IMG/VR virus record: IMGVR_UViG_3300048625_000299
Span: 62,001 to 126,000 of that record
Length of the DNA: 64,000 nt
Direction: 5' to 3' (one strand)
A program made the position numbers and the translations under genes. The notes beneath the pieces are model-generated. The model worked only from the letters and a program-made list of their open reading frames with translations. It did not search any database and was not told the DNA's origin. Every line of letters begins with the position of its first letter. Positions within the stretch are counted from its first letter, which is position 1. Shown piece after piece: positions 23,975-63,897 of this stretch.

Positions 23975-24049
23975 ATAGAAGTGCGAGAAGACAAGACCAC
24001 TGCTGATGCGCTAGAAGACATCCAAACATTCAGTCCAAAGATGTTGTAA
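23975..24049 (+). pseudogene. stranded duplicate of the ligase C-terminus (IEVREDKTTADALEDIQTFSPKML*)
   Basis: 11/24 ungapped identity to the current ligase tail, same distance to stop. Confidence 0.8.
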
Positions 24050-24071
24050 TATTTCGTTTTTGTGGTATAAT
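24044..24071 (+). promoter_or_regulatory. sigma70 promoter TTGTAA-16-TATAAT with extended TG
   Basis: Perfect -10. Confidence 0.65.
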
Positions 24072-24094
24072 AATCACATCGAAAGGAAAACGCA

Positions 24095-24595
24095 ATGTCT
24101 CATACACTGTTTAAAGTCTCTGGTCCAAACACGAAGCTCGTATACTACGGCTATGCAAAAACCGGAAACGAACAAGCAACGTTCATGGGTGGTTGTTTGC
24201 GTACAGACAATGAAAAGCGTGGCGATGCTCGTTTGCTCGAAGCGAATGATAATGATGCTGCGTCTTTGGAATTCACCATGCTCTGTGAGTATGAGGAAGA
24301 ATTCGAAGCGTGGACTGCTCGCAACGACAATCGTGCTGCTGATGCATGTTCGATCACTGGTCCAACAATGTTTCCAATCGAAAGCGCTCGCCGTGCCGCC
24401 AAAGAGTTCCCAGAAGTACTCAGCGCTTGGAAGCTTCGCATGAAACAAAAGGAAGCGAAGACTGCGTTGGAAGCATACCAGCTTGGCGCATATACGTTCC
24501 CTCAAATCAAAGAGTTGAACGCAAAGCATGCTGGTGTGATGAAGCAAATGGAAGTACTGACTCCATTGGAATTTGCGAATCTCTATGGGATTTAA
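24095..24595 (+). CDS. hypothetical protein, possibly a degenerate GIY-YIG fold
   Basis: TLFKVSGPNTKLVYYGYA resembles the GIY-YIG hairpin; AAAGGA SD. Confidence 0.65.
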   Translation: MSHTLFKVSGPNTKLVYYGYAKTGNEQATFMGGCLRTDNEKRGDARLLEANDNDAASLEFTMLCEYEEEFEAWTARNDNRAADACSITGPTMFPIESARRAAKEFPEVLSAWKLRMKQKEAKTALEAYQLGAYTFPQIKELNAKHAGVMKQMEVLTPLEFANLYGI

Positions 24596-24719
24596 GGAAT
24601 GGTTGGAGTCGCTACAGCCACGCAGAGAACATACGTCAGGCGAAGATCTGGCGGACTCTATCGCGTTGTTTGTGATATGTGGTCTGCTGTATTTGTGTAT
24701 ATTTCTATAAGGAATCTGT

Positions 24720-25329
24720 ATGTCAGGATGGCGTAAGAATCAAATCGCTGATCAAGTCAATAAGGACAATGTTGTTGACCTCGGCGCGGTGCTGAGAGCG
24801 AAGCTTGAGAAGGCTATTGAGGATGAGGAACGCAAGAAGAAGATCCTTCGTCCAAAATACATGACCAAACAACAGATCATGGATATGCACCCCCTTGATG
24901 TGTATATGAATATACGCAGTGGTGAGTGGGCAATTGAAGATTTTGTTGCTTGGGTTGTTGTTTGTGAAAATGCCGCATACATCGCCGGCGCAGAGGATAC
25001 ATTATGAAAACATTCATCATCGGTACAGTGTTTGGGATTGTTCTAACTACTGTTGGATTTTCTGGTCTCGCTCGAATCTTCGACAATGGTGTCGTTAAAG
25101 TCCAACAAGTAACTAAAGAAGCTGCACAATGAAATCTGGAATTGACCTTGAACTGAGCCTGGAACAGACGGGCGTAGTTGTTGTGGAAGAGTTGAAAGTG
25201 ACTGTTGAAATCAACAGCACATATGAAGACCAACGATCGAAGGATATCGTCAAAGCAGCTGAGCTGTTGCTCAGCTATTATATGGCGCCAGACGAACACC
25301 GAAAGTACTTGGAACAAAAATCCAGTTGA
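24720..25329 (+). other. small hypothetical ORFs (24720-25007, a short TM ORF, 25129-25329)
   Basis: Coupled co-oriented ORFs. Confidence 0.55.
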
Positions 25330-25410
25330 CTTCGTAGCACGGACCCTATATAATTAACCCACTGCTAAAGATAGACTTTAGCAGGCCAACTATTCAAAGG
25401 AGCTTTGAAT
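25326..25410 (+). promoter_or_regulatory. sigma70 promoter TTGACT-17-TATAAT plus two-hairpin leader (GATAGAC-loop hairpin; SD/AUG hairpin)
   Basis: CTGCTAAAG-ATAGA-CTTTAGCAG; ATTCAAAG-GAG-CTTTGAAT. Confidence 0.85.
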
Positions 25411-26428
25411 GTCAAAAAAATACGACACTCTCGTCCTCATCGGACGCTTTCAACCGTTTCATAACGCTCACCTTGAGATCATCAAGCGTAGCACTGCGCT
25501 CTGTAATAAACTGATTGTTATTACGGGCAGCGCAAAACAGCCTCGCACATACAAGAATCCGTTCACCAGCTTTGAACGCGAGATGATGATCAAGCGTGCG
25601 ACTGCAGGTCTCGCATTGACTATCAATGTCGTCGAAAACATCGACACAATCTACAACGACCAAGCCTGGGCTGTCCGGATACAATCCATCGTGAACACAT
25701 TGGCATGCGACGGTGATAAGATCGGCATCATCGGCCACAAGAAAGATGACAGCTCATTCTACTTGGATATGTTTCCGCAATGGGGATATGAGAACGTCGA
25801 AGAGATTGCACCGCTGAGTGCTGTCAATATTCGCGACCTGTACTTCAAGCGCAACTGTAATCTCGAATTCATTCGCGGGGTGGTACCTCAAACTACTTTC
25901 GAAATCTTGCTGGACTTCAAGCAAAGCGAAGAGTATGAACAAATCATCCGTGAGCGCGAGTTCGTAGAGAACTACAAAAAGCAGTACGCATCGCTTCCAT
26001 ATCCTCCAATCTTCAGTACTGCTGATGCTGTAGTGATCCAATCCGGCCATGTGCTGATGATTCGTCGTCGTGCTGAGCCAGGCAAAGGGTTGTGGGCGCT
26101 TCCCGGCGGATATGTGAACGCAAATACCGACAAGTCTGTTGAAGCTGCAATGCTCCGAGAGCTCCGCGAAGAAACAAAGATCAAAGTTCCCGAGCCAGTC
26201 CTGCGTGGTAATATCGTTCGCAGTAAGGTGTTCGATGCTGTCGATCGTAGTCCTCGTGGCCGCATTATCACTCATGCATTCCACATTCAGTTGCCAGACG
26301 GCGAGCTGCCAAAGGTCAAAGGATCTGATGATGCTGAAAAGGCACGTTGGGTTCCGATTGCTGAAGTGAAGAGCGAAGACTGCTTCGAAGACCACTTTGA
26401 AATTCTCCAACACTTTTTGGGAGCTTAA
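25409..26428 (+). CDS. natV: bifunctional NMN adenylyltransferase / ADP-ribose Nudix hydrolase (NadM-Nudix, NatV-like)
   Basis: GRFQPFHNAH, KNPFT, Nudix box GG...RELREET, GSDDA. Confidence 0.95.
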   Translation: MSKKYDTLVLIGRFQPFHNAHLEIIKRSTALCNKLIVITGSAKQPRTYKNPFTSFEREMMIKRATAGLALTINVVENIDTIYNDQAWAVRIQSIVNTLACDGDKIGIIGHKKDDSSFYLDMFPQWGYENVEEIAPLSAVNIRDLYFKRNCNLEFIRGVVPQTTFEILLDFKQSEEYEQIIREREFVENYKKQYASLPYPPIFSTADAVVIQSGHVLMIRRRAEPGKGLWALPGGYVNANTDKSVEAAMLRELREETKIKVPEPVLRGNIVRSKVFDAVDRSPRGRIITHAFHIQLPDGELPKVKGSDDAEKARWVPIAEVKSEDCFEDHFEILQHFLGA

Positions 26429-26748
26429 AATGTCAGACGGACTAGATCGTTCGGGGCTAGAATGGTTCAATGAACGTGGCTATTGGGTAATCCGAAAGGT
26501 CCCCAATACCAAAGACCAATTCTATGTTGCTAGTACAGCAATTCCACCAGACAATGTTCTGAAAATTTATGGGATATTGTGATGGGATGGACTGACTGGA
26601 ATTGGATTAACGTTGCGCTTGTCTTCGTGAATGGAGCAGTAGCGTATGATTGTTTCGCTGATAAGGACGTCGATCGTTCTTTCGGTGGTTGGGTGAACGT
26701 GGTTGCTAGTTCTATGAACACTGCAATGATTGCAATAAAGGTTTTGTA

Positions 26749-26943
26749 ATGGTACGAATTATCGATGCAACACCACATCAGAGTGTGGTCAAAAAGAAGG
26801 TCTGCCGTCACTGTGGCGTGACGTTGGAGTATGTTCCTAACGACATTCAAGAACGACGAGTTACTGATTATGATGGCAGTAGCGAGCTGATCAAGTACAT
26901 CGAGTGTCCTGCTTGCAAAACACACGTTGATGTGAGGTACTAA
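26749..26943 (+). CDS. small zinc-ribbon protein
   Basis: CRHCG...CPAC. Confidence 0.7.
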   Translation: MVRIIDATPHQSVVKKKVCRHCGVTLEYVPNDIQERRVTDYDGSSELIKYIECPACKTHVDVRY

Positions 26944-26944
26944 T

Positions 26945-27889
26945 ATGTGGAAAAATGTAAACGTCTTTGAAGATGAAAAAGAGCACGTTAAGAAGTATGT
27001 TTTCGAGAAAGATGACATCGCTATCGAGTCCGTTCTTTATCGTTATCCTACTTACGATGAACGCACTGTTCTCTGCATTAGTACCATGTGCGGATGTCCA
27101 ATGGGCTGTCGCTTTTGTGGAACTGGTGATTATTTTGTTCGTAGCCTTACTGCGGATGAAATTGTAGGCCAAGCTGAATACATCCTCGAAACACAAATCG
27201 GCGGACTGAATCCTCGTGACATCAAGAAGTTGCAGATCATGGTGATGAGTATGGGCGAGCCTGCTTTGAACAAAGCTCTGGAAGAAGCATTCGATCGTCT
27301 GTATGCAAAGTACCCAAATGCAGCACTGCTGATTAGCTCAAGCGGTCCTAAGGTTAGCTACCAATGGATCATCGAAATGAGCAAGCGGATTCCGACTGTC
27401 GGTTTGCAATTCAGCATTCACGAGAGTACAGACGAAGCACGCGACAAGTTGATTCCATTCGATAAGAAGTTGAACCTGCAAGAGATTGCTGATGTTGGCG
27501 TTCGCTGGCACTTGGATACTGGCCGTAAGCCATATTTCAACTATTGCGCTCACGAGGGCAACGATAAAGATGAGGACGTCCAACGACTACTCAAGTTGTA
27601 CCATCCACGCATCTGGGAAGCGACTGTCTCTGTCATTTGTGAACGCGATGCTCATGCAGAAGCAACGAACGACAAGCAACGCAACTTGGCTATTGAATTT
27701 GGTAACAAGCTGCTTGCTGAAGGTTACAACGTCCGTGTGTTCGATCCGGCTGGTCAGGATACAATCGGTGGTGGTTGTGGTCAGTTGTGGTATGTTCAAG
27801 ACTGGATGAAGGACCATCCAGAGCACGTCAAGCCATCTGTTGGTTGTGGTATGCAAAAGGTCCACACACCAAAAGAATGGAACGTATGA
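26945..27889 (+). CDS. RlmN/Cfr-family radical SAM methyltransferase, N-terminally shortened
   Basis: LCISTMCGCPMGCRFCGTG, MSMGEP, FSIH, GQDTIGGGCGQL. Confidence 0.9.
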   Translation: MWKNVNVFEDEKEHVKKYVFEKDDIAIESVLYRYPTYDERTVLCISTMCGCPMGCRFCGTGDYFVRSLTADEIVGQAEYILETQIGGLNPRDIKKLQIMVMSMGEPALNKALEEAFDRLYAKYPNAALLISSSGPKVSYQWIIEMSKRIPTVGLQFSIHESTDEARDKLIPFDKKLNLQEIADVGVRWHLDTGRKPYFNYCAHEGNDKDEDVQRLLKLYHPRIWEATVSVICERDAHAEATNDKQRNLAIEFGNKLLAEGYNVRVFDPAGQDTIGGGCGQLWYVQDWMKDHPEHVKPSVGCGMQKVHTPKEWNV

Positions 27890-28677
27890 AGTTTTTGATC
27901 CAATACAATCTAATGGCAGAGTCGCAACTCGAAGCAGTTAAGTCTGCAGCTCTGCCATATCCTCACCAGTATGTTGGAGTGATTCCGTTTTCAAATGAGA
28001 TCACCGCAGCAGAGGGTGAAGAGATTGTTGGTACCGATTACATTCCATATGGGTCAACGCTGATGTCGACGATTGGCCTAGATTTGGGATGGAAGGGATT
28101 GCACTTCGATCTCGAACAGTTCAATTACGAAGCTGCAGTCGCCAATCGGGATGATATGCTGAATGATGGCGATATTATGACTGTCGAAGAGACTATCGAT
28201 TTCATGCGCGCCAGCACTCAAGAACAATGGTTCATCCGTCCTTCACTCGATCTGAAGCATTTTGCTGGGCAGGTAATCGAACGCATAGAGTGTGTGAAGT
28301 GGTTAACACAAGCACTCGGTTGTTCATCATCTGAGACGAAACGGATGTACAAAGACATGAAGATTGTCGTTGCAACACCACAAAACATTCAAGCCGAATG
28401 GCGTTGGTTTGTGGTCGGAGGCAAAGTGGTCGATGGGTCAATGTACCGCTCACATGGTCAATTGATCAAGCTGCATGAGACTGATCCAAAAGTAATCGCT
28501 GAAGCACAAACGTTTGCTGATAAGTGGTTGCCAAACCAAAACGTCGTGATGGACTTGGCGCTTGTCGATGATGAATTGAAGGTAATTGAATTCAACTGTA
28601 TCAACTGCAGTGGGTTCTACAATCACGATGTTCGTAAAATATTTGATGCACTGTATATGGAGAGTACAAAATGCTAA
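27886..28677 (+). CDS. ATP-grasp protein (R2K/DUF4343-like)
   Basis: FIRP...KHFAG, EWRWFVV, MDLA, IEFNCINCSGFY. Confidence 0.82.
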   Translation: MKFLIQYNLMAESQLEAVKSAALPYPHQYVGVIPFSNEITAAEGEEIVGTDYIPYGSTLMSTIGLDLGWKGLHFDLEQFNYEAAVANRDDMLNDGDIMTVEETIDFMRASTQEQWFIRPSLDLKHFAGQVIERIECVKWLTQALGCSSSETKRMYKDMKIVVATPQNIQAEWRWFVVGGKVVDGSMYRSHGQLIKLHETDPKVIAEAQTFADKWLPNQNVVMDLALVDDELKVIEFNCINCSGFYNHDVRKIFDALYMESTKC

Positions 28678-29156
28678 AGCATGTAAAAGGCAACTTACTC
28701 GATCTAGCTGAGGCTGGTCATTTTGATGTGGTTGTTCAAGGCTGCAATTGCTTCAACGCAATGGGCGGAGGGATCGCACGTGAGATTCGCGAGCGCTATC
28801 CAGTAGCCGCGGCCGCTGACAATAAGACTGTTAAGGGCGATTACAATAAGCTGGGCAATTGGACCAGCTGCCCAATAATTGTCGGAGACTTGGGCTATGT
28901 TTCTAGCTTCGTTATCATCAACGCATACACTCAATATAATATGAGCACTGGTCAAGATGTGTTCGAGTATGCAGCGTTTGAGCTGATCCTCCAAAAGCTA
29001 CTCTACACGTATGGAGATAAGCGAATTGGATTTCCGTTCATTGGTATGGGCCTTGCCCGTGGTGATAAGCAACGAATCATCGGAATGCTTGAATGGTTTG
29101 CAGATGAAATTGAGAAGCGTGGCGGTAGTGCAACGCTAGTGGAATTCCAGCCATGA
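28671..29156 (+). CDS. macrodomain ADP-ribose processing protein
   Basis: GNLL, GCNCFNAMGGGIA, NAYTQ, PFIGMGLARG. Confidence 0.9.
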   Translation: MLKHVKGNLLDLAEAGHFDVVVQGCNCFNAMGGGIAREIRERYPVAAAADNKTVKGDYNKLGNWTSCPIIVGDLGYVSSFVIINAYTQYNMSTGQDVFEYAAFELILQKLLYTYGDKRIGFPFIGMGLARGDKQRIIGMLEWFADEIEKRGGSATLVEFQP

Positions 29157-29650
29157 ACATAGTCAAGTCCCCAAACGAGTATACCACTCGCAATAAATTC
29201 TCAATCTTCCTTGCTGGATCAATTGAGATGGGCATGGCGGTAGATTGGCAACAATCGATCGCTGATGCGTTGTATGGCATTGATGGAATACAGCTACTGA
29301 ACCCACGTCGTGATGATTGGGATTCTAGCTGGGCACAAACGATCGAGAATCCACAATTTGCTGAGCAAGTAAGATGGGAGCTGACAGCACTCGAACGATC
29401 TGATTTGATCATCTACTACTTTGCACCAGGCACACAAAGTCCAATCTCGTTGCTTGAGCTGGGACTCTATGCAAACCATACAAAGAACATCTGGGTGTGT
29501 TGTCCAGAAGGATTCTGGCGTAAGGGCAATATCGAGATCGTCTGCCAACGATACATGATTCCATTCTTTGATGATTTAGATCACATGGTGGACGATCTGA
29601 GGTACTATCTTCCGATTTGGACGGAAGATGGATATGAGCAGTTGACATAA
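29153..29650 (+). CDS. nucleoside 2-deoxyribosyltransferase-like protein
   Basis: IFLAGSI, NPRR, QVRWE, SPISLLELG. Confidence 0.88.
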   Translation: MNIVKSPNEYTTRNKFSIFLAGSIEMGMAVDWQQSIADALYGIDGIQLLNPRRDDWDSSWAQTIENPQFAEQVRWELTALERSDLIIYYFAPGTQSPISLLELGLYANHTKNIWVCCPEGFWRKGNIEIVCQRYMIPFFDDLDHMVDDLRYYLPIWTEDGYEQLT

Positions 29651-29725
29651 CAATGGGGTTATGCTATACTGTAATCAAGCCCTCGCGATAGACGTGAGGC
29701 ATTTTAACTGTTAAGGAGATTAACA
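29642..29725 (+). promoter_or_regulatory. sigma70 promoter TTGACA-17-TATACT plus the same two-hairpin leader
   Basis: CCTCGCG-ATAGA-CGTGAGG; TGTTAA-GGAGA-TTAACA. Confidence 0.85.
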
Positions 29726-31122
29726 TGAAACTGAGCAAAAACATTCTACTGAACACAGACAGCTACAAAGTGTCAATGTGGAAGCAATACCCTGTTGGAA
29801 CAACTGGCGTATTTTCTTACATCGAATCGCGTGGCGGTCGTTATGATCAAACAGTGATGTTTGGTCTGCAAGCGTTCATCAAGGAGTACTTACTTGACCC
29901 CATTACACAGTCCGACATCGATATCGCCGAAGAGATTCTTCTCGCACACGGAGAGCCATTTAATCGTAGCGGCTGGCAGTATATCCTCGACAAGCACGAC
30001 GGATATCTCCCCGTCGTCATCCGAGCAGTCCCCGAGGGTACTGTGGTACCGGTTAAGAATGTCCTCGCAACCATCGAGAACACAGATCCCAACGTACCGT
30101 GGCTGACTACATGGCTCGAGACTCCCTTGCTTCGTGCGATCTGGTATCCAACTACTGTGGCAACACAGAGCTGGTCGATTCGCAAAGTGATTTTGGATTA
30201 TTTGGAGAAGACTGGTGACCCTGCTCTTATCGATTTTAAGTTACACGACTTTGGTGCTCGCGGTGTTAGTTCCCTTGAGTCCGCTGGCATTGGCGGCGCC
30301 GCGCACCTCGTTAATTTCATGGGTACCGATACTGTTACCGGTTTGTTGTATGCTCGTGAGTATTACAACGCTGGTATTAGTGGGTTTTCAATTCCTGCAG
30401 CCGAGCACAGCACAATCACAAGTTGGGGCCGTGACGGAGAAGTCGACGCCTACCGAAACATGCTTACAAATTTCGCTCGGCCCGGGTCCATTGTTGCAGT
30501 CGTTTCCGACAGCTACGATGTATTCAATGCCGCTAGCAAATTGTGGGGAGAAGAGCTCCGTCAGCAAGTGATTGATAGCGGTGCTACTGTAGTGATTCGT
30601 CCTGATAGTGGTGACCCTGTTGAAGTCAACCGCAAGTTGATTGAGATCTTAGGAGAAAAGTTTGGATACACTACAAACGCCAAAGGATTCAAAGTCCTCA
30701 ATAATGTTCGCCTCATCCAGGGGGACGGTGTCAATGAGTTATCCATCCGCAGTATCCTTGGGGCACTCATGGCAATGGGATGGTCGGCAGATAATATTGC
30801 ATTCGGTATGGGCGGTGCCTTGCTCCAGCAAGTTGACCGAGATACCCAGAAGTTTGCAATGAAATGTTCTTCTGCGAAGATCAATGACGTGTGGGTCGAT
30901 GTACAAAAAGATCCAGTCACTGATAGTGGCAAGAAGTCGAAGGCAGGTCGAGTGACTCTTTGGAAGAGTGGCGGCGAATGGATCAGTAGCGTTGAAAAGC
31001 CAGCTGGCTGGCACGATAAAGCAACTGGTGAGTTTGTTGAAGTGCTGGAAACAGTATACGCTAACGGAAAGTTGATTAACGAATATACATTCGACAACAT
31101 CCGAGCAAGAGCTCGCAAATAA
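29725..31122 (+). CDS. nadV: nicotinamide phosphoribosyltransferase
   Basis: TDSYK, HDFGARG, AAEHS, VSDSYD, IRPDSG, QGDG, GMGGALLQ. Confidence 0.97.
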   Translation: MKLSKNILLNTDSYKVSMWKQYPVGTTGVFSYIESRGGRYDQTVMFGLQAFIKEYLLDPITQSDIDIAEEILLAHGEPFNRSGWQYILDKHDGYLPVVIRAVPEGTVVPVKNVLATIENTDPNVPWLTTWLETPLLRAIWYPTTVATQSWSIRKVILDYLEKTGDPALIDFKLHDFGARGVSSLESAGIGGAAHLVNFMGTDTVTGLLYAREYYNAGISGFSIPAAEHSTITSWGRDGEVDAYRNMLTNFARPGSIVAVVSDSYDVFNAASKLWGEELRQQVIDSGATVVIRPDSGDPVEVNRKLIEILGEKFGYTTNAKGFKVLNNVRLIQGDGVNELSIRSILGALMAMGWSADNIAFGMGGALLQQVDRDTQKFAMKCSSAKINDVWVDVQKDPVTDSGKKSKAGRVTLWKSGGEWISSVEKPAGWHDKATGEFVEVLETVYANGKLINEYTFDNIRARARK

Positions 31123-31125
31123 GGG

Positions 31126-31150
31126 AAGGCCACTCCGGTGGCCTTTTTCT
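31126..31150 (+). terminator. rho-independent terminator after nadV, overlapping the next promoter (-10 TATAAT ~31162)
   Basis: AAGGCCAC-TCCG-GTGGCCTT then TTTCTTT. Confidence 0.85.
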
Positions 31151-31194
31151 TTGGACTGTTGTATAATTGTTCCTATCAACTTAGGAATAACATC

Positions 31195-31656
31195 ATGTTC
31201 AAATGGCCTTGGAAACGCGAACGACGAATTGCTTTCATTGATGGTGACCAATCGCTGCCAGATGTACTTCGAGCACATCAGAAGTACATCGTTGGCACAA
31301 ACACCGAAACACACTTGGTTCGACTGATAACTCCTCAGAAGGATAGAGACGCTGAGCCCCGAATCCTACGTAACCTTGTTGGCATCAACAAGATCTACCT
31401 TGGTGGATTCTCTACTGGCAAAGAAGTGACTGATAAGTTTATTGGTGCTTATATCCAAAAAGCAATCAATGATGGTTATACACACATCTCTGTCATTTCG
31501 AGCGACTACGATTTCATCGACATTTTCAAATTGGCCATTGTGTTGGATGAGCGCGCAAAGCAGTTGACGTTTCGAATGATCGTGCCAACGAAAGCAAGCA
31601 AGAAATTGAACGAGATGCCAGACCGATTATTGAACATCGAGATTGTGAGAGACTAA
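31195..31656 (+). CDS. NYN (PIN-fold) domain protein
   Basis: FIDGDQ, KEVTD, ISSDYDF. Confidence 0.8.
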   Translation: MFKWPWKRERRIAFIDGDQSLPDVLRAHQKYIVGTNTETHLVRLITPQKDRDAEPRILRNLVGINKIYLGGFSTGKEVTDKFIGAYIQKAINDGYTHISVISSDYDFIDIFKLAIVLDERAKQLTFRMIVPTKASKKLNEMPDRLLNIEIVRD

Positions 31657-31657
31657 G

Positions 31658-31852
31658 ATGGAATACACATTAGTGATTTGGACAGTTGTTGCTGCATTTG
31701 GTACAGGAGCTGGCACATATAGGCCGCAAGAGTATCGAGATTGGCGACCGCTAGCCGTTTTCAATAACGGTGGCGCTCAATCAATGAACCAGTGTCAGGC
31801 AGCCGCTGAACAATTAAAGCTGCAAAAGTTTGAATGTATCAGAACCAAGTGA
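31658..31852 (+). CDS. small exported Cys-pair protein
   Basis: Hydrophobic N-terminus; C...C pair. Confidence 0.6.
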   Translation: MEYTLVIWTVVAAFGTGAGTYRPQEYRDWRPLAVFNNGGAQSMNQCQAAAEQLKLQKFECIRTK

Positions 31853-31862
31853 AGGAAAGAAA

Positions 31863-32903
31863 ATGCGTAAACTTGCATCCATTCGTCGGATCGACGAACT
31901 GAACCCTATTGAGGGTGCCGACAAAATCGAAGTAGCAACCGTTGGTGGTTGGAAAGTCGTGTGTCAAAAAGGTCTCTATAATGTCGGAGATCTTGCTGTG
32001 TACTTCGAGATCGACTCGTGGATTCCATCTGCTGTTGCTCCGTTTCTGACAAAGGACGGCCACTTCCCCAAAGTGTTCGAGGGTGTTGAAGGTGAACGTC
32101 TAAAGACAATCCGCTTGCGCGGACAATTGTCTCAAGGTCTGTTGATGCCTATACACAACGACAAGACTGGCACATATTTGATGGTCTACACAGATGAAAC
32201 TGGTGAATATTCGCTGACTGTAGCCGAAGGTGATGATGTATCTGAGCCTCTTGGTATCCTGAAATGGGAGAAGGCAATCCCTGCTCAGCTCGCTGGCATT
32301 TCTCGTGGCAACTTCCCAACTTTGATTCCAAAGACCGACCAAGAGCGTGTGCAAAACTTGAAGAAAGAGATTGCTGCTGCTCAAGGACAAGTCTACGAAG
32401 TGACGGAAAAGCTGGAAGGCTCATCGATGACTTGCTATGTAATTGATGGTGAGTTCGGAGTATGCTCCCGTAACCTCAACCTCAAGGAAACTGAGGGCAA
32501 CTCATTCTGGAATGCAGCTCGCGACAATGACCTCGAGCAAAAAATGCTTGCTCGTCAGTACGACTTTGCAATCCAAGGTGAGTTGATTGGTCCTGGCGTT
32601 CAAGGTAATATCTACAAATTGACAAAGCCTGAGTTCTATGTGTTTGACATCTATGATGTTAAGGACGGCGAGTATATGAATCCAGCTGCACGTCGTCAAT
32701 TGGTTGAGTCTCTTGGCCTGAAGCATGTACCGATTCTGGACGATATGTATGTCCTTAACGATGATGTAGAACAACTGTTGACGTTAGCCGAAGGCAAGTC
32801 TAGAATGTTTGATACAGAACGAGAAGGCATCGTGTTCAAACAGAATGACGGTGGCATGACGTTCAAAGCGATCTCGAACAAGTACCTATTAAACGAGAAG
32901 TGA
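31863..32903 (+). CDS. RNA ligase, DRB0094 family
   Basis: N-terminal PIEGADKIE module; EKLEGSS, QGEL, EGIVFK, FKAISN. Confidence 0.93.
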   Translation: MRKLASIRRIDELNPIEGADKIEVATVGGWKVVCQKGLYNVGDLAVYFEIDSWIPSAVAPFLTKDGHFPKVFEGVEGERLKTIRLRGQLSQGLLMPIHNDKTGTYLMVYTDETGEYSLTVAEGDDVSEPLGILKWEKAIPAQLAGISRGNFPTLIPKTDQERVQNLKKEIAAAQGQVYEVTEKLEGSSMTCYVIDGEFGVCSRNLNLKETEGNSFWNAARDNDLEQKMLARQYDFAIQGELIGPGVQGNIYKLTKPEFYVFDIYDVKDGEYMNPAARRQLVESLGLKHVPILDDMYVLNDDVEQLLTLAEGKSRMFDTEREGIVFKQNDGGMTFKAISNKYLLNEK

Positions 32904-48850: not shown

Positions 48851-49602
48851 CAAAGTTGTATACAGTGCGCGTATCGTATGATTATGTTGTACTTGCTGAT
48901 AGTGTCAATGATGCATATGCCGTAGGTCAGAGCTACATCAAAGAAGCATTGAGCGATATGCCAATCCATGATGTTGATGTTGACATTATCGAAGGCGTAA
49001 GTGCATATGGTTGGGATAATGAATGTATCCCATATGGCGGCGACGGTAACACTCGCACAGGCGAATATTTGAAGGAGCAAGTAAAATGAAATCTATTACT
49101 ATTATTTTTGGAACGATCGCTTTTGTCGTTGCAAGCATTCTCTTCCGCGCATGGGCATTAACTGTGTTGTGGGCATGGTTCCTCGTACCGCTTGGTATGG
49201 TTGCGTTGTCAATCTCGAGCGCAATCGGCATCTCGATCATTGTCGGCATGTTTACACAGCATCTTGCAAAAGAATCGAAGGATGAGAAGGCAAAAGACAC
49301 ATATGAATTGATCGGCGATATTGCTGGTCGTGCAATCGGTGCGCCTCTGCTGTCGTTGTTCTTTGGTTGGATCGTAACTCTGTTCATGTAATATGTGCGA
49401 ATGTTCTGTCTGCAAGTATAGCAAATTGGTTAGGCCAATGCTATTGCAACTCGACGAAGAGCAACGGCAGTTCTTCGAACAGATGTATGAATCATTGATC
49501 GAGACTCAATACGATCTCGACTACTACAAAGCAATCGTAGATGGTTCATGGCCGATGGCAGATGAAATTATCGCACGCAAACGCAGGAAAGAAACTGAAT
49601 GA
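48847..49602 (+). other. hypothetical ORFs 48847-49089, 49086-49391 (multi-TM), 49393-49602
   Basis: Coupled ORFs. Confidence 0.65.
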
Positions 49603-50236: not shown

Positions 50237-52154
50237 ATGATGATGGAAAAGATATTTCGCAGTAAGTGGGCCAAGCTGACCATCAGCCGGTACACACACT
50301 GGACTGTTAAGTATGAAGTGCCTTCCGACGATTGTGATTCGTGGGAATGGGACAACGAGCGACCCCACGGCCAACGTGCAATTCATCGCGCATGGATTAT
50401 CATTGGCATCAGGCGTTTGTTTTTCCAACTGTACTTGTGGAAGGTAACACCATTCGAAGGCAGCTGGGATGGTGATAATACGAAGCAATATGGCATTACA
50501 TACTTCGAACGATCGCTCCATGTTCATTGGGGCCGCACTAAGGTTTATTGGTTGCCTTGGGATTGGAAGATCGTCCGTCACGACTTGCTCCATATGGATG
50601 GCAGTCTCTACTATCGCAACTCATACCCAATCAAGAAGAGATCATATTCTTGGTATGAAGTATTGGAGATGAAAGAATCGCCATTCCCTAAGTCGGATGT
50701 TCAAACACAAGTTGCAGATTACGTTGAACTCACTCACTACACTAAGGATGGTCGCAAGCAAGTAGCAAAGATCCGACTCGTCGGTGAAGAGCGCGAATGG
50801 AGATGGCGTTGGTTTAGCTGGCTGCCATGGCCAAGACAAATCAGTCGAGTTGTTGATTGTTCGTCTGACGTTGAGCTCGGCGAAAGGGCTGGCTCGTGGA
50901 AGGGTGGAATGATGGGTTGGAGTGCCCCCTTAGAAAAGGGACAGTCTTTGAGAGAAGCATTCTATGCATGGTACAGGAAGTGGGACGGCCGATGAAACTG
51001 GATAAAGAAGGAAACCGAGCATTCTGGATGGATGTATATCCAGATGGTTGGACTGCCGAGCGCCTCGAAAATGAGATGCATGATTATATGCAGCTGCTTG
51101 ACGGATTGGATGTGTTGTATATGCACATTACTAATGGCCAGTGCTCAAAACCAATGACAAGCAAGTCTGTCGTAATGGCTTTGCATGATGATGCTGTTAC
51201 AGAAATAGTTGACCAAGCAATCAAAGACCACTTCGATGATCGCTATGGTTTCAACGAAGACCTGCGTAAGTTGACTATCTCTGTATTATCGGAGAAAGTG
51301 GTGTCGCTAAAAGGTAAGAATGGAACTGAGTTTACCCAAGCTCAGTTGTGTAAGATTATTGACTTATTGGATGTGTGATATGAACAAGACTCAAAAACGT
51401 GTAGTTAAAGTGCTCGAGCGAATGATCGATCTCGCCAAAGAGAATGAAGATGACGCAGATATGTTCAGTGAAGAACTCGAATACATGCTCGACGGCATCG
51501 CAGAGAATGATGGTTTTGGCACTGAGCGTACAACCGATCCACGAGGCGACTTCCGCGACTATGGTGGTTGGTCTATGACACGTGTCCAAGGGGTGGACAA
51601 ATGAGTATCAGTTGGGAAGTTGAAGAGCTTGCAGCAGTAATGACTGGCGCAAAGGATGATGATGCTGTTGAGAAAGTAATCAACGAAGGGACTGCCGATC
51701 GACGCTTGTATGACAAATACGAAATCTCGTTGGAGCAGTTCGAGCACATCGTCGAAGACTTGATGAAGTTTGTTCCCAAACTAACATCCCCACTCACAAA
51801 GAAGCAATATCATGCTTTGATGTGGAATGACTCCGCAATTGTTAAGGTAGAAGCAAAATGAAACACAAAGTCCGCGTCACGATGCATTATGTGGTTGAAG
51901 TAGAATTCAACCCATCACAAGATATGCAAGAAACACTCAAAGAATTTAACGAGTGTATGTTCTCATGTGAGAGTGAAGAAGAACTCGCAAAGTTTACTGC
52001 TACGCAAGTAGCTCGTAATGGTGGCAGCGGCTTTGTTGAGGGCGTTGGCAAATGTGGTGAAGCGTATTGGGATACGTTCGCTGATGATCCCGCTCCTGAT
52101 GCACTGGTCAGCATCGAAGTTGAAGAAGTAGAATCGGAGATTGTAAATGAATGA
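50237..52154 (+). other. hypothetical ORFs (50237-50995 Trp-rich; 50992-51378; ~51380-51604; ~51601-51861; 51858-52154)
   Basis: Coupled co-oriented ORFs. Confidence 0.65.
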
Positions 52155-61129: not shown

Positions 61130-63897
61130 ATGGAAATCATTGGATTTATAGCCTGCGTTGTCATTTTGATATATGTGACATTCGTATGGTTTTTCTGCGC
61201 TCCATTCACGATGGGGAAGTGGAATATGGGCGGCGTTCCTAACACATGGACGGATCGCCTAATGATGTTGGTGTTCCTTGCTGTCATCGCCATGGGGTGG
61301 TATATGGCATTCGCTAACGCTCCGTTCACAATTGTGGTGACAAAGGTATGAGTGATGTTATTGTAGGTAGCACACCAGGCATGCCCACCGAAGCATTGAA
61401 TGAGTTGAAAGATCTAATCGCTCGGCTGAATGAGCAGTTCTATTTCAAGAATGGTGCTACTGCTGCGTACTGGCATTTGGCTATTGCATTGAGCGAACAC
61501 ATCGGAGAGGGACGAGAATGAACTTAGATACGTTACGTGACAATCTGAAGAACACGATTGCTGGCAAGGAAAGATTGTATCAATCCTACTGCAGCGATAA
61601 GGACTATGCTTCAATGGCAGAAGTGTTTGTTATCAATGCCAAGTTGGAGTTCATCCAAATCAACATCGACGAACTCAAGAAGATCTTGGCTGATGTTGAG
61701 CTGTGTATCAACCACGCTGCAGCAAATAGCTGGGCTGGCTGCGTAGACCGCCAAAGTGGCGCATTCGATGAATCTGAAATGCCTGTATGGAGATGACATG
61801 ACGACACAATCTGCATTGGTTCGTAACTTTCTGGTAGTAGAGAGTCGTGCTGAAGAACATGACCATACAATTTCAGCCCTAGGCGATTCGTTCTATGTCT
61901 ATGATGAGAATGGCGCTACTGTATGTGGTACCACCTCGATTGAAGGATTGGCTTGCTACTTCGATGCGCTCGACAACGTAAAGAGGAAATCCAAATGACA
62001 ATCGAATGCTGGGACAACCCACTTTACACAACTGAAGATCGACTTGAGATGGCAAAGGGTAGAATCAAATTCCGTGATGGTGGTGTAAGATTATCACTTC
62101 AAGAATGGAAGATTAAAAATGGCAAGAGTTGAGCATAAAACTACCTATCGCGTAGACATCATTGAGAGTGAGCGTGGTTGGGGCCAAAAGGTTGACGAGA
62201 GTGTATACTTCGATAATGCTGAAGAGGCGATCGAGTATGCAAACGCGTATAACGAAAAGTTTAACCCACCTTTAAAAGCAGGCGAAGGTGTGCCAGATTG
62301 GTACATGGTCGCACGATACGCAGGAGCAGTACGATAATGGAATACAAATGGATTTGCATCATGGCCGCCGTTGTCATGGGATCAGCATCGATCGGACATA
62401 TGTTCGAAGAACGAGCAAGATCAGAATGCCGCATCGAAGCAATTAAAGCCGCTGGTGCTGCCAAACTCAACGTTGATGAAATTGCAAAGGTATGTGACAA
62501 ATGATGCAAGAAAAGATTGAAATTCCTAGAAAAGAATATGACCAGTTGCTGCGCGACGCTCATTTGTTGAACTGCTTGCGCAATGCTGGCGTTGATAATT
62601 GGGATGGCTGGGACTTCGCGATTGAAGAATTCATGTCACAATACGGCGACGAGTAATGTTCTTCGGTGGCCTCAATGGAGACGGGTTCGCTGACGAGTCG
62701 GACTATGACTATGGCAGCTACAGTGAAGGACCACAATACAACCGCACTGGTCCGAGCAAGATAATTCGGTGCCATGGATGTGGTTGCTATGACTTTATGT
62801 GGAAACACACCAAATTCGGTTGGCGTTTGGCATATAGTGGTGGTATACTAGAAGGCAAGATTCACGCATGCCCGTCTGAAGGAGAATGAAAATGGGATTC
62901 GCAAATAGCACTGAGATTACTGTCTATGCAGATGATGCATACCATTACAGCGTCGTCGCAGAAGACATGGGTTGCTGTATTAACTACTACGAGCAAGGCA
63001 AGCCTGCACCATTCACGCATATTACCTTCGGCAATATGAAGGAGATGGAAGCAGTCGCAAAAGCAATGTTGCAAGCTGTCAACACGTACCGCACGATGTT
63101 GAATGGCTGATACTGAACAAACGTGGCGAGGAACGGAGATTGAGCTAGAGTATCTCAAATCCGTTTTCGTTCGCCTACACGAAATCGGCGAGAAGAATTG
63201 GAACGACTCACAACGTCAGCGGGCAAAAGATACTCGCAGGCGTTGTGTTGAGTTGTGTGAGTATCGCTACTACCTATTGAGAAAAAAGACCGATGTTTAG
63301 GACAGTCAAATCATACCTGACGCTCAAGTACGTCAGACATGCATTCAACGATCCGATTGGAGGTTGTGCAGTCAATGTGTACGTCGACTGTTATGGCGAA
63401 CAATGGTTGAAGGATAGTCGCTGGGCATTTTTTAGAGTGAGGACAGGTGGATGAGATCGCATGAATTAGCAAAACTCCTATTGGAGAATCCAGACGTTGA
63501 GCTGGTCCTTCAGGATGACCCTGAAGGTAATGGGTATCGTGCATTGCAAGGAGCAGACTTCGATGTCTTGTGGGATGAGTGTCAAGAGACAGTGCTCAGC
63601 ACAGACTGGTCAGCTGATGATGCTGATATGGACGATGATGAGTGGGAAAAATTGAAAGCTCAACAGTCTGGTAAGATCGCCGTATTGTATCCATAAGGAA
63701 CTGCAATGCCATGGTTCGATAACATGCGCAATGCTGGTGAATATCCTCGTAAAGGGTATGGCTGGCAGAGCGAAGAACAACAACGTGAAGAGATCCAACG
63801 CAAGATCAACAAGGGTTGGGATGAGCCTTGGGTGTTGAAAGAAGCTGCTAAGTTTGGCATCACTCGCCAAGAAGTAGACACGACTCAAGGTTATTGA
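61130..63897 (+). other. run of small hypothetical ORFs (61130 TM, 61518, 62119, 62656 Zn-like, 62886, 63103, 63451, 63706)
   Basis: Coupled co-oriented ORFs. Confidence 0.6.

Follow-up and report, generated by a model that had tools for sequence, protein, structure and literature searches.

Why should two phage genes that rebuild the cell's NAD+, a known counter-measure against bacterial immunity, begin with the same small RNA structure? In a 64,000-nucleotide stretch of the IMG/VR virus record IMGVR_UViG_3300048625_000299 (positions 62,001 to 126,000 of that record; hereafter the window), a sequence-only reading had noticed that natV and nadV each have their own sigma70 promoter, a hairpin with the loop AUAGA on a different stem, and a second hairpin covering the Shine-Dalgarno (SD) sequence and the start of the AUG. 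It was proposed there that this is a cis element coupling translation of both enzymes to NAD/ADP-ribose status, bound for example by NatV itself or by a host factor. I first examined whether the two leaders are real, then whether they occur elsewhere, and finally what they may do. In summary, the observation held, and the leader is conserved in over a hundred related phages and one cultured cyanophage. The interpretation was supported only in part.

Two leaders in the window

All the sequences were found at the positions given by the sequence-only reading. The features are as follows, all on the plus strand.

25326..25354 (+), natV promoter (TTGACT-17-TATAAT), ending 7 nt before hairpin 1
25362..25384 (+), natV leader hairpin 1, a 9-bp stem with loop AUAGA (25371-25375) closed by G-C; -10.3 kcal/mol, z -4.6
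25385..25390 (+), natV linker GCCAAC, unpaired in the minimum-free-energy fold and A/C-rich
25391..25411 (+), natV leader hairpin 2, UAUUCAAAG-GAG-CUUUGAAUG, pairing the SD AAGGAG (25397-25402) and the whole AUG (25409-25411); -5.5 kcal/mol, z -4.8
25409..26428 (+), natV, NMN adenylyltransferase + Nudix, 339 aa (Pfam CTP_transf_like 4.5e-12 and NUDIX 6.2e-20)
29642..29670 (+), nadV promoter (TTGACA-17-TATACT, with TG extension), ending 10 nt before hairpin 1
29681..29699 (+), nadV leader hairpin 1, a 7-bp stem (one G-U) with loop AUAGA (29688-29692) closed by G-C; -9.5 kcal/mol, z -5.3
29700..29708 (+), nadV linker CAUUUUAAC
29709..29725 (+), nadV leader hairpin 2, UGUUAA-GGAGA-UUAACA, covering the SD AAGGAG (29713-29718) and the A of the AUG; about -2.5 kcal/mol
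29725..31122 (+), nadV, nicotinamide phosphoribosyltransferase, 465 aa (Pfam NAPRTase 2.1e-63 and NAMPT_N 1.6e-28)

The natV leader reads CTGCTAAAG-ATAGA-CTTTAGCAG, then the linker, then TATTCAAAG-GAG-CTTTGAATG. The stem of this second hairpin is 9 bp, one more than the sequence-only reading had drawn, and its 3′ arm contains the whole ATG. The nadV leader reads CCTCGCG-ATAGA-CGTGAGG, then CATTTTAAC, then TGTTAA-GGAGA-TTAACA, whose last A is the A of the ATG. Both promoters match the sigma70 consensus at 11 of 12 positions and are the joint best sites in the 8-kb span 24000-32000.

Is the shared structure more than chance? The heptamer GATAGAC is not enriched in the window (9 copies against 6.7 expected). 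However, only the two copies in the leaders cap a stem of 7 bp or more, while the other seven have stems of 1-2 bp. Both leaders fold into the two-hairpin shape, at -18.2 kcal/mol (z -4.1) for natV and -13.8 kcal/mol (z -3.1) for nadV. A covariance model run with filters off found only these two sites in the 64 kb, at 57.6 and 51.6 bits, with the next best at 12 bits. SD-sequestering hairpins are rare at other gene starts in the window (9 of 77, by crude calls), and the other early genes transcribed from similar promoters have nothing like this leader.

Distribution and covariation of the leader

In the complete 243.6-kb genome of the cultured Synechococcus phage B23, the covariance model again found only two copies, at natV and nadV. 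Across IMG/VR, 123 distinct leaders were found in natV-centred loci; 58 precede nadV, 44 precede natV, and 21 precede a small ORF that heads a natV operon. Thus, the element marks operon leaders rather than the two genes as such, which corrects the sequence-only reading. In a protein-independent scan of IMG/VR, about 30 of 31 structurally complete copies lie at NAD operons. The element does not need a promoter, because in many relatives it sits in the natV-nadV intergenic space with the natV stop codon inside its 5′ arm. It is absent from 41 cellular NadM-Nudix loci and from KVP40-type phages, the experimentally studied NARP2 system. Subgroup-2 nadV genes and the nadV gene of RsoM2USA keep hairpin 2 without hairpin 1.

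Both stems covary strongly. On the 123 distinct leaders, 80.6% of cells pair against 62.0% in shuffles, and the covariation score is 0.415 against 0.141 in shuffles (0 of 500 shuffles reach it) and 0.04-0.12 for slid registers. RNAalifold recovers both hairpins, and hairpin 2 shows compensatory changes in relatives. A mutual-information scan ranks only these two helices; no third helix covaries. The only highly conserved unpaired bases lie in the apical loop. The loop is GAUAGAC in 74 of 75 distinct model hits, while the adjacent pair takes AU, CG, GC and UA forms. Loss of the GAUAGAC hairpin from homologous leaders had been named in advance as grounds for rejecting the idea, and the homologous leaders keep it. 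Many copies have an A-rich 3x3 internal loop in hairpin 1, but the copies in the window are fully paired and B23 also lacks it. The linkers are 5-20 nt in length and poor in G, and the spacing to the AUG is 36-42 nt. The 3′ arm of hairpin 2 ends at or inside the AUG in nearly all leaders, and the natV class pairs the whole AUG.

It had also been stated beforehand that an Rfam match would remove the novelty. No Rfam 15 family, including the NAD+-I (nadA) and NAD+-II (pnuC) riboswitches, boxB-like elements, pistol and phage motifs, scored at its gathering threshold anywhere in the window. With E <= 10 on the two leaders alone, only Mu-gpT-DE at 15.9 bits (gathering 49) and SAM-V at 14.2 bits (gathering 41) appeared. 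A DNA operator for a dimeric repressor, such as an NrtR or NadR box, is ruled out, since the palindrome arms vary freely while staying complementary, and G-U pairs, which are RNA-only, are common (GU+UG in 18 of 123 at the second pair).

A sister group of phages with a different NMNAT (type 2) uses the same layout with the loop G-GYRGU-C, so U-A-G is the constant core. A GAUAGAC-type hairpin on nadV is present in 46 of 46 contigs with the type-1 NatV and in 0 of 28 with the type-2 NMNAT, although NadV is about 80% identical throughout. On the NadV tree, the loop type on the nadV leader and the NMNAT type switch together in 4 of 4 well-supported independent pairs (sign test p = 0.125) and in 8 of 8 in all. 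However, this is confounded by physical linkage, because the type-2 NMNAT lies directly upstream of nadV and so replaces its leader. Moreover, three loci (L062, L080 and L190) carry the type-2 NMNAT but an AUAGA loop, which weakens a strict story of protein-loop co-evolution.

Possible mode of action

I consider this to be a previously undescribed cis-regulatory mRNA leader that heads the NAD+-salvage genes (NARP2-type: NAMPT plus NMNAT-Nudix) of a clade of large T4-like, cyanophage-related phages. What the analysis itself demonstrates is two covarying hairpins: hairpin 2 pairs the SD sequence and the start codon, so the ribosome site is closed in the ground state, and hairpin 1 lies a fixed distance upstream of the AUG and presents a nearly invariant pentaloop on a stem whose sequence is free to vary. 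The rest is deduction. Hairpin 1 would be a recognition module for a trans-acting factor, most likely a protein, and its occupancy would set how readily a 30S subunit can use the short unpaired A/C-rich linker and the weak hairpin 2 (-2.5 to -5.5 kcal/mol). I prefer feedback repression, in which the bound factor occludes the standby linker or locks hairpin 2, holding down two enzymes that drain PRPP and over-produce NAD+; relief would come when NAD+ is being destroyed. The opposite sign, an activator that opens hairpin 2 as Mu Com does on mom mRNA, fits the anatomy equally well.

I am confident that this is a real, selected, NAD-operon-specific leader acting on translation initiation. As required of a translational operator, the structured element overlaps or abuts the ribosome-binding site and is conserved by covariation. 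That a protein reads the loop is about as likely as not, and the explanation as a whole is held no more firmly than that. A protein is favored over a ligand by the lack of a third helix, by the confinement of the highly conserved unpaired bases to the apical loop, by the dispensable internal loop of hairpin 1, and by the different loop on the same scaffold in the sister lineage, as expected if a binding partner co-evolved. NatV is the leading candidate for the factor, but its identity as such is doubtful; the co-switching described above is the only evidence bearing on it, NatV has no recognizable RNA-binding domain, and no binding partner was identified. Protein binding, expression and any response to NAD/ADP-ribose status were not measured here. 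Hairpin 2 is weak, especially on nadV, so it may only damp translation constitutively.

There is a rationale for control, since NARP2 consumes PRPP and over-produces NAD+, and the KVP40 operon was too toxic to clone in E. coli (10.1101/2024.02.11.579819). NAD+ depletion is one of the commonest bacterial anti-phage strategies, NARP2 is one of the few known phage answers to it, and so far NARP2 has been treated as two enzymes that are simply expressed. A dedicated, strongly conserved RNA control element on exactly these genes implies that their dosage or timing is under selection, which fits the reported cost and toxicity. With more than 120 distinct sequences, two covarying helices and a clean gene association, the leader adds a well-supported family to the short list of phage-specific cis-regulatory RNAs. 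It also gives a 55-nt handle on whether phages sense the state of the NAD pool, and the system is tractable, with sigma70-type promoters, a tiny leader, and a cultured phage (Synechococcus phage B23/B3) that carries both copies.

It is possible, although unlikely, that the leader is a sensor that lets the phage turn on its NAD+-rebuilding counter-defense only when NAD+ is being destroyed. Either NatV, whose Nudix domain binds ADP-ribose, or the RNA itself would read an NAD-pathway metabolite through the AUAGA hairpin and open or close the ribosome site on both mRNAs. As far as I could find, that would be the first cis-RNA-controlled, damage-responsive anti-defense regulon in a phage and, for the NatV version, a prokaryotic-virus analogue of the IRE/IRP enzyme-as-RNA-regulator logic.

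Alternative readings and comparable systems

A minimal riboswitch is unlikely but not excluded. In this view, the leader itself binds NAD+, NMN, ADP-ribose, nicotinamide or PRPP, and binding shifts the balance between the closed hairpin 2 and an open state, perhaps through pairing of loop AUAG with the YUAU that otherwise pairs with the AUG. The confinement to NAD-salvage genes fits this view. YUAU, the complement of AUAG, is present downstream in 42 of 45 natV leaders against 24.9 +/- 3.1 in shuffles, and UYURU in 31 of 62 nadV leaders against 13.3 +/- 2.9. In the natV class, that UAU is the very triplet that pairs with the AUG, so a loop-linker helix would free the start codon. However, the YUAU enrichment is confounded by the need of hairpin 2 itself to pair with the AUG, and the complement is not universal in the nadV class. 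The internal loop of hairpin 1, which might have supported this view, is absent from the window's copies and from B23, so it cannot be a ligand pocket, and only about 5-7 conserved unpaired bases remain. The loop differs in the sister lineage with the same pathway downstream. Ligand binding was not assayed, and few conserved bases do not exclude a ligand, as the guanidine-II (mini-ykkC) riboswitch shows. That riboswitch consists of very small hairpins with an invariant apical loop and covarying stems in front of an SD and was once thought too simple to bind a ligand; it needs two like hairpins whose loops kiss, whereas here there is one recognition hairpin per leader, and the second hairpin has a different loop that contains the SD. 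The NAD+-I and NAD+-II riboswitches are also cis-regulatory RNAs in leaders of NAD-metabolism genes, and NAD+-II also acts by hiding the SD, but the present leader, which is confined to phages, has no pseudoknot and no conserved internal-loop pocket.

Equally unlikely is a constitutive leader with no sensor, in which hairpin 1 protects the mRNA from 5′-end-dependent decay or defines a processing site, while hairpin 2 throttles translation of toxic enzymes to a fixed low level. Hairpin 1 begins about 0-4 nt from the predicted transcript start in both window copies, and 5′ stem-loops are known mRNA stabilizers. Hairpin 2 is modest in strength, NARP2 over-expression is costly, and the nadV genes lacking hairpin 1 indicate that hairpin 2 can work alone. 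However, a stabilizer needs a stem and not a particular loop, yet the loop is the most conserved part while the stem sequence drifts freely. In addition, the hairpin is retained with the same loop in promoter-less intergenic spaces, the spacing to the AUG is fixed, and similar promoters in the window lack such a leader.

A transcription-level element, either an attenuator or terminator or a boxB-like antitermination site read by RNA polymerase-associated factors, is less likely still. The nadV hairpin 1 plus CAUUUUAAC scores as weakly terminator-like, and some intergenic copies are followed by U-runs (for example at loci L060, L118 and L136), but natV-class copies are followed by GCCAAC or GACAUUAU with no U-run. 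Like lambda boxB, hairpin 1 is promoter-proximal with a purine-rich pentaloop, but the main loop AUAGA does not fit the GNRNA fold of boxB; only one variant (GUAGA, locus L202) does. Tight coupling in distance to the SD/AUG hairpin points to the ribosome, not the polymerase. The weakest reading is that the loop is a kissing or antisense target for a phage sRNA or tRNA: an invariant 5-7 nt apical loop on a variable stem is the classic anatomy of antisense-recognition loops, U-A-G fits a UNR U-turn, and these phages carry many tRNA genes, but none of the five GTCTATC sites in the window lies in a hairpin loop (stems of 1-2 bp), no candidate partner emerged in B23, and nothing ties any such RNA to NAD metabolism.

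Among protein-read leaders, the translational activation of phage Mu mom mRNA by Com has a similar two-part anatomy, a protein-recognition hairpin immediately 5′ of a second hairpin that sequesters the SD and start codon of a gene whose product is toxic if over-made. There is no sequence similarity, no Com-like zinc-finger gene was identified here, the sign of regulation is unknown for the present leader, and the resemblance itself was not tested. The autogenous operators of E. coli thrS (ThrRS) and T4 gp43 and the coat-operator hairpins of MS2 and PP7 are short hairpins with a sequence-specific loop and a free stem sequence, placed at or just upstream of the ribosome-binding site and read by a protein that is often the product of the regulated gene. 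The loop AUAGA or GYRGU matches none of them; here the recognition hairpin is separate from the SD/AUG hairpin, and two unlinked genes share the operator. An analogy only, without homology, is the eukaryotic IRE read by IRP1 (aconitase), which acts at cap-dependent scanning. There, a metabolic enzyme is the reader, several mRNAs of one pathway share the element, and the loop of the 5′-UTR hairpin reduces to a three-base core flanked by two interacting positions; in the phage leaders, positions 2 and 6 change together (A.A, G.U, A-U, G.A) around U-A-G.

The two leaders in the window

The sequence-only reading had reported that natV and nadV each begin with a two-hairpin leader sharing one loop, and this observation held, since the letters lie exactly where they had been placed. 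The features are as follows.

25362-25384, natV hairpin 1, CTGCTAAAG-ATAGA-CTTTAGCAG, followed by the linker GCCAAC
25391-25411, natV hairpin 2, TATTCAAAG-GAG-CTTTGAATG, with a 9-bp stem whose 3′ arm is the end of the SD spacer plus the whole ATG
25409-26428, natV, a cytidylyltransferase-like NMNAT plus NUDIX (Pfam)
29681-29699, nadV hairpin 1, CCTCGCG-ATAGA-CGTGAGG, with one G-U pair, followed by the linker CATTTTAAC
29709-29725, nadV hairpin 2, TGTTAA-GGAGA-TTAACA, ending on the A of the ATG
29725-31122, nadV, NAMPT_N plus NAPRTase (Pfam)

The two best sigma70-like sites in 24000-32000, with 11 of 12 matches each, end 7 and 10 nt before hairpin 1, so that hairpin 1 sits at the very 5′ end of each transcript. 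It was assessed whether the similarity exceeds chance. The heptamer GATAGAC alone is not enriched in the window (9 copies against 6.7 expected), but only these two copies cap a stem of 7 bp or more, while the other seven have 1-2 bp. Both leaders fold into precisely two hairpins, at -18.2 kcal/mol (z = -4.1) for natV and -13.8 kcal/mol (z = -3.1) for nadV, while hairpin 2 alone is only -5.5 and -2.5 kcal/mol, respectively. SD-covering hairpins as a genome-wide habit were rejected, since 9 of 77 crudely called gene starts have one, and natV and nadV have the best two. Two other genes in the window (49086-49391 and 51601-51861, + strand) have 6-bp hairpins that present or cover their SD (TATTTG-AAGGAG-CAAGTA and TGTCCA-AGGGG-TGGACA) but have no upstream AUAGA hairpin.

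Distribution and covariation in related phages

A megablast search found no close relative among deposited phages. By protein, the nearest are only 52-60% identical: Synechococcus phages B3/B23, Acidovorax phage ACP17, and Ralstonia phage RsoM2USA. In contrast, IMG/VR holds a large family at 75-85% protein identity; the window itself is part of IMGVR_UViG_3300048625_000299 (234,864 bp). I read the sequences upstream of nadV and natV in 156 loci (the L numbers below designate individual loci or contigs), and the same two-hairpin leader was found again and again, with different stems and the same loop. Thus, homologous leaders keep the GAUAGAC hairpin, the absence of which had been named in advance as grounds for refutation. 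A match in Rfam, which had likewise been named as removing the novelty, was not found. A search of the literature on riboswitches or RNA motifs of phage nadV/NAMPT genes, and on GAUAGAC, found nothing relevant in what was searchable.

I collected and aligned 123 distinct leaders. RNAalifold recovers both hairpins unaided. For the structure specified here, 80.6% of cells pair against 62.0% in shuffles, and the covariation score is 0.415 against 0.141 (0 of 500 shuffles reach it), while slid registers give 0.04-0.12. Hairpin 1 has three parts. In the 3-bp upper helix, the closing G-C is invariant, the next pair is AU 55, CG 49, GC 12, or UA 3, and the third pair is 97% paired. Below it is an often A-rich 3x3 internal loop, which is paired in only about half the sequences and fully paired in the window's own copies, and at the base is a lower helix that is 98-100% paired. 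A K-turn reading of the GCAAAGAG...CUCCGAGC internal loop was rejected, because the GA/AG positions are not kept in the GCAAUGCG...CGCAAAGC class while the 3-bp upper stem covaries. Mimicry of a tRNA anticodon arm by the 7-nt loop GAUAGAC was also rejected, because position 33 would be A rather than U. Hairpin 2 is 6-9 bp with a GAU, GAA, or GAG triloop, and its 3′ arm ends at or inside the AUG in nearly all leaders. In the natV class it reads UAUNNNAAG-GAU-UUUNNNAUG, with many compensatory changes.

Since the first table of leaders had been selected on GATAGAC, I built a covariance model and read the loop from its hits instead. Of 75 distinct high-scoring hits, 74 have GAUAGAC and one has GAAAGAC. 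More distant branches keep AUAGA with other closing pairs; B23 natV has A-AUAGA-U, and L062 and L080 have U-AUAGA-A. These branches also show slight variants, as L209 nadV has C-AAUAGA-G and L202 nadV has G-GUAGA-C.

With filters off, the model finds only the two leaders in the 64-kb window, at 57.6 and 51.6 bits, with the next best at 12 bits. Synechococcus phage B23 (MN695335.1, Kyanoviridae) is a cultured T4-like cyanomyovirus. Its natV (gp46) is preceded by CCAGAAA-AUAGA-UUUCUGG plus ACUAAAG-GAG-CUUUAGU, and its nadV (gp49) by CCUUCGG-AUAGA-CUGAAGG plus ACUAAAG-GAG-AUUUAGU. Over the complete 243,633 bp, these are the only two model hits (25.5 and 24.8 bits, next best 14.3). A model-free scan of B23 finds 12 AUAGA-loop hairpins of 5 bp or more among 765 ATAGA sites, but only those two are followed by an SD hairpin and a gene start. 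Thus, no larger regulon was found in the window or in the whole B23 genome.

In the natV-centred loci there are 147 hits, 123 of them distinct; 58 precede nadV, 44 precede natV, and 21 precede one of four small-ORF families that sit immediately upstream of natV. The covariance model was run on fetched loci only, not on all IMG/VR and metagenome contigs. The four small-protein families (108, 118, 124, and 155 aa; L102:7673-7999, L104:7467-7823, L141:7096-7470, and L009:5584-6051) are unrelated and are inserted between the leader and natV in different relatives, so they share its control. The 108-aa family has a conserved H..C....HTDGCGW motif that could bind metal. Two further copies of the leader were found. 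A divergent 492-aa NAMPT-like gene (L123:4409-5887) and a 233-aa ORF resembling the C-terminal half of NAMPT, a split one (L150:8949-9650), each carry a full GAUAGAC leader, and some contigs therefore have three leaders.

I also performed a protein-independent scan of all IMG/VR for GAGATAGACTC-N14-26-AAGGA, which gave at least 117 hits. In this sample of 117, 31 pass the full two-hairpin definition, and about 30 of those are at NAD-salvage operons. Two recurrent non-NAD groups turned out to be coding coincidences, GAG-ATA-GAC-TCT being E-I-D-S inside long ORFs. The only structurally complete GAG-AUAGA-CUC plus SD-hairpin copy in the sample that is not at a recognisable NAD gene (L322:2283-2333, + strand) precedes a 71-aa ORF (MKRIKELSEF...), and it is either chance or a further regulon member. 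A search of 185,579 species genomes gave no clue to a host or prophage; the best cellular NadM-Nudix is 45% identical, and none of 41 cellular NadM-Nudix loci has a hit. KVP40-type phage VH7D and Acidovorax phage ACP17 have no such leader, while RsoM2USA nadV has only the SD hairpin.

About a third of the nadV-bearing contigs carry a different NMNAT (324-329 aa, about 33% identical to NatV) directly upstream of nadV (L013, L023, L036, L037, L058, L077, and L160-L201). Its leader has the same layout: a sigma70 promoter, hairpin 1, a linker, and then AUUCUAAG-GAG-UUUAGAAU(G). However, the loop of hairpin 1 is G-GUAGU-C in most, or G-GCAGU-C, G-GUGGU-C, or G-GCGGU-C (G-GYRGU-C), on stems that again covary. 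In these contigs nadV usually keeps only the SD hairpin, while the nadV of L037 has G-ACGGU-C. Loop positions 2 and 6 therefore change together (A.A, G.U, A-U, G.A) around a Y-R-G core that is usually U-A-G.

Possible function of the leader and its reader

The analysis shows that this is a selected RNA structure specific to NAD-salvage operon leaders, whose second hairpin closes the ribosome-binding site. Several points argue for action on translation. Hairpin 2 includes the AUG, and the distance from the loop to the AUG is held at 36-42 nt. The element is also retained where there is no promoter, in natV-nadV intergenic spaces, with the natV stop codon inside the 5′ arm of hairpin 1 (GGUGCCUAAGCG-AUAGA-CGCAAAGGC). 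In the nadV leaders of L004, L017, L029, L069, L071, L096, L113, L136, and L144, where nadV directly follows natV, this stop codon is UAA, and every terminating ribosome must therefore melt the putative recognition hairpin, a built-in coupling between natV translation and nadV control.

That hairpin 1 is a recognition module is, on the other hand, an inference. The strongest constraint lies on a 5-nt apical loop while the stem sequence drifts, the internal loop is dispensable, no third helix covaries, and a sister lineage carries a different loop on the same scaffold. Together these fit a protein-read operator better than a ligand pocket, although neither binding nor translation was measured. 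It is plausible that the bound factor covers the short A/C-rich linker, a ribosome standby site, or clamps the weak hairpin 2, and so represses. The reverse, a Com-like opening of hairpin 2, is not excluded. The proposal of the sequence-only reading, a cis element coupling the translation of both enzymes to NAD/ADP-ribose status, is thus partly supported: the shared selected structure holds, while a response to that status was not examined. The reason for control is at hand, since NARP2 uses PRPP and over-produces NAD+ even without a defence system, and the KVP40 operon could not be cloned in E. coli because of toxicity (10.1101/2024.02.11.579819).

Which factor reads the loop? NadV is about 80% identical across all these phages, yet the nadV leader carries a GAUAGAC-type hairpin in 46 of 46 contigs with the type-1 NatV and in 0 of 28 with the type-2 NMNAT, the different NMNAT of the sister form. 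On the NadV tree, the NMNAT type changes about 8 times, with at least 4 replacements of NatV forced by well-supported branches. The hairpin co-switches in 4 of 4 pairs on supported branches, or 8 of 8 on all branches. This points away from NadV or a universal host factor and toward NatV or something inherited with it. However, the evidence is weak; the sign test gives p = 0.125, the type-2 gene physically replaces the nadV leader, and L062, L080, and L190 pair a type-2 NMNAT with an AUAGA loop. Thus, I consider NatV a possible but unlikely reader. The small ORFs co-transcribed with natV were also screened as candidate regulators, and they have no Pfam domain and match only PHROGs of unknown function (phrog_12218, phrog_37251, and phrog_33851). 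Since they occur in only a minority of the phages, they cannot be the general factor.

Other explanations seem less likely. A minimal riboswitch is doubtful. YUAU, the complement of loop AUAG, is enriched downstream (42 of 45 against 24.9), and in the natV class it is the triplet that pairs with the AUG, so a loop-linker helix could free the start codon, but the signal is confounded with hairpin 2 and is not universal in the nadV class. A constitutive stabiliser plus throttle, which is equally doubtful, explains the 5′ position and the weak hairpin 2 but not the invariant loop or the promoter-less copies. A transcriptional attenuator or boxB-like site is improbable, as only the nadV class has a weak U-tract and AUAGA is not GNRNA. 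An antisense or kissing target is the least likely, no partner having been found in the window or in B23.

In layout the leader works like Mu Com/mom, and in logic it works like the autogenous operators (thrS, T4 gp43, MS2/PP7) and, by analogy, IRE/IRP, but it is a member of none of these. It was compared with the defining features of the NAD+-I and NAD+-II riboswitches, a terminator, a boxB hairpin, and a DNA operator, and it fits none of them. I regard it as a new cis-regulatory RNA family, while the general kind of control is already known.

Genes around the leaders

The window is the early and nucleotide-metabolism region of a roughly 235-kb T4-like phage. It holds RNR subunits, PhoH, an exonuclease, DNA ligase, two RNA ligases, and a primase, nearly all on the + strand. 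Four genes sit between natV and nadV (26945-29650, + strand).

26945-27889, + strand, a radical SAM protein
about 27775-28677, + strand, an R2K ATP-grasp
28671-29156, + strand, a phosphatase of phrog_335
29153-29650, + strand, a nucleoside 2-deoxyribosyltransferase-like protein

They are presumably co-transcribed from the natV promoter and may form an extra nucleotide- or ADP-ribose-processing module tied to NAD salvage. In B23, the gene between natV and nadV (gp47, L157:4036-4566) is a NADAR-domain protein (Pfam 2.6e-48) of an ADP-ribose-processing family. It is annotated only as hypothetical and is another NAD/ADPR-linked passenger in the same operon. B23 gp45 (L157:2221-2844) is annotated as translation initiation factor 2 in GenBank, but it is a NUMOD3 homing endonuclease (Pfam 7.9e-16; phrog_314). 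In the window, a perfect 8-bp G+C-rich palindrome (31126-31145; AAGGCCAC-CGGA-GTGGCCTT as read on the minus strand, where the scan flagged it) lies 4 nt after the nadV stop codon and is likely the terminator of the nadV transcript.
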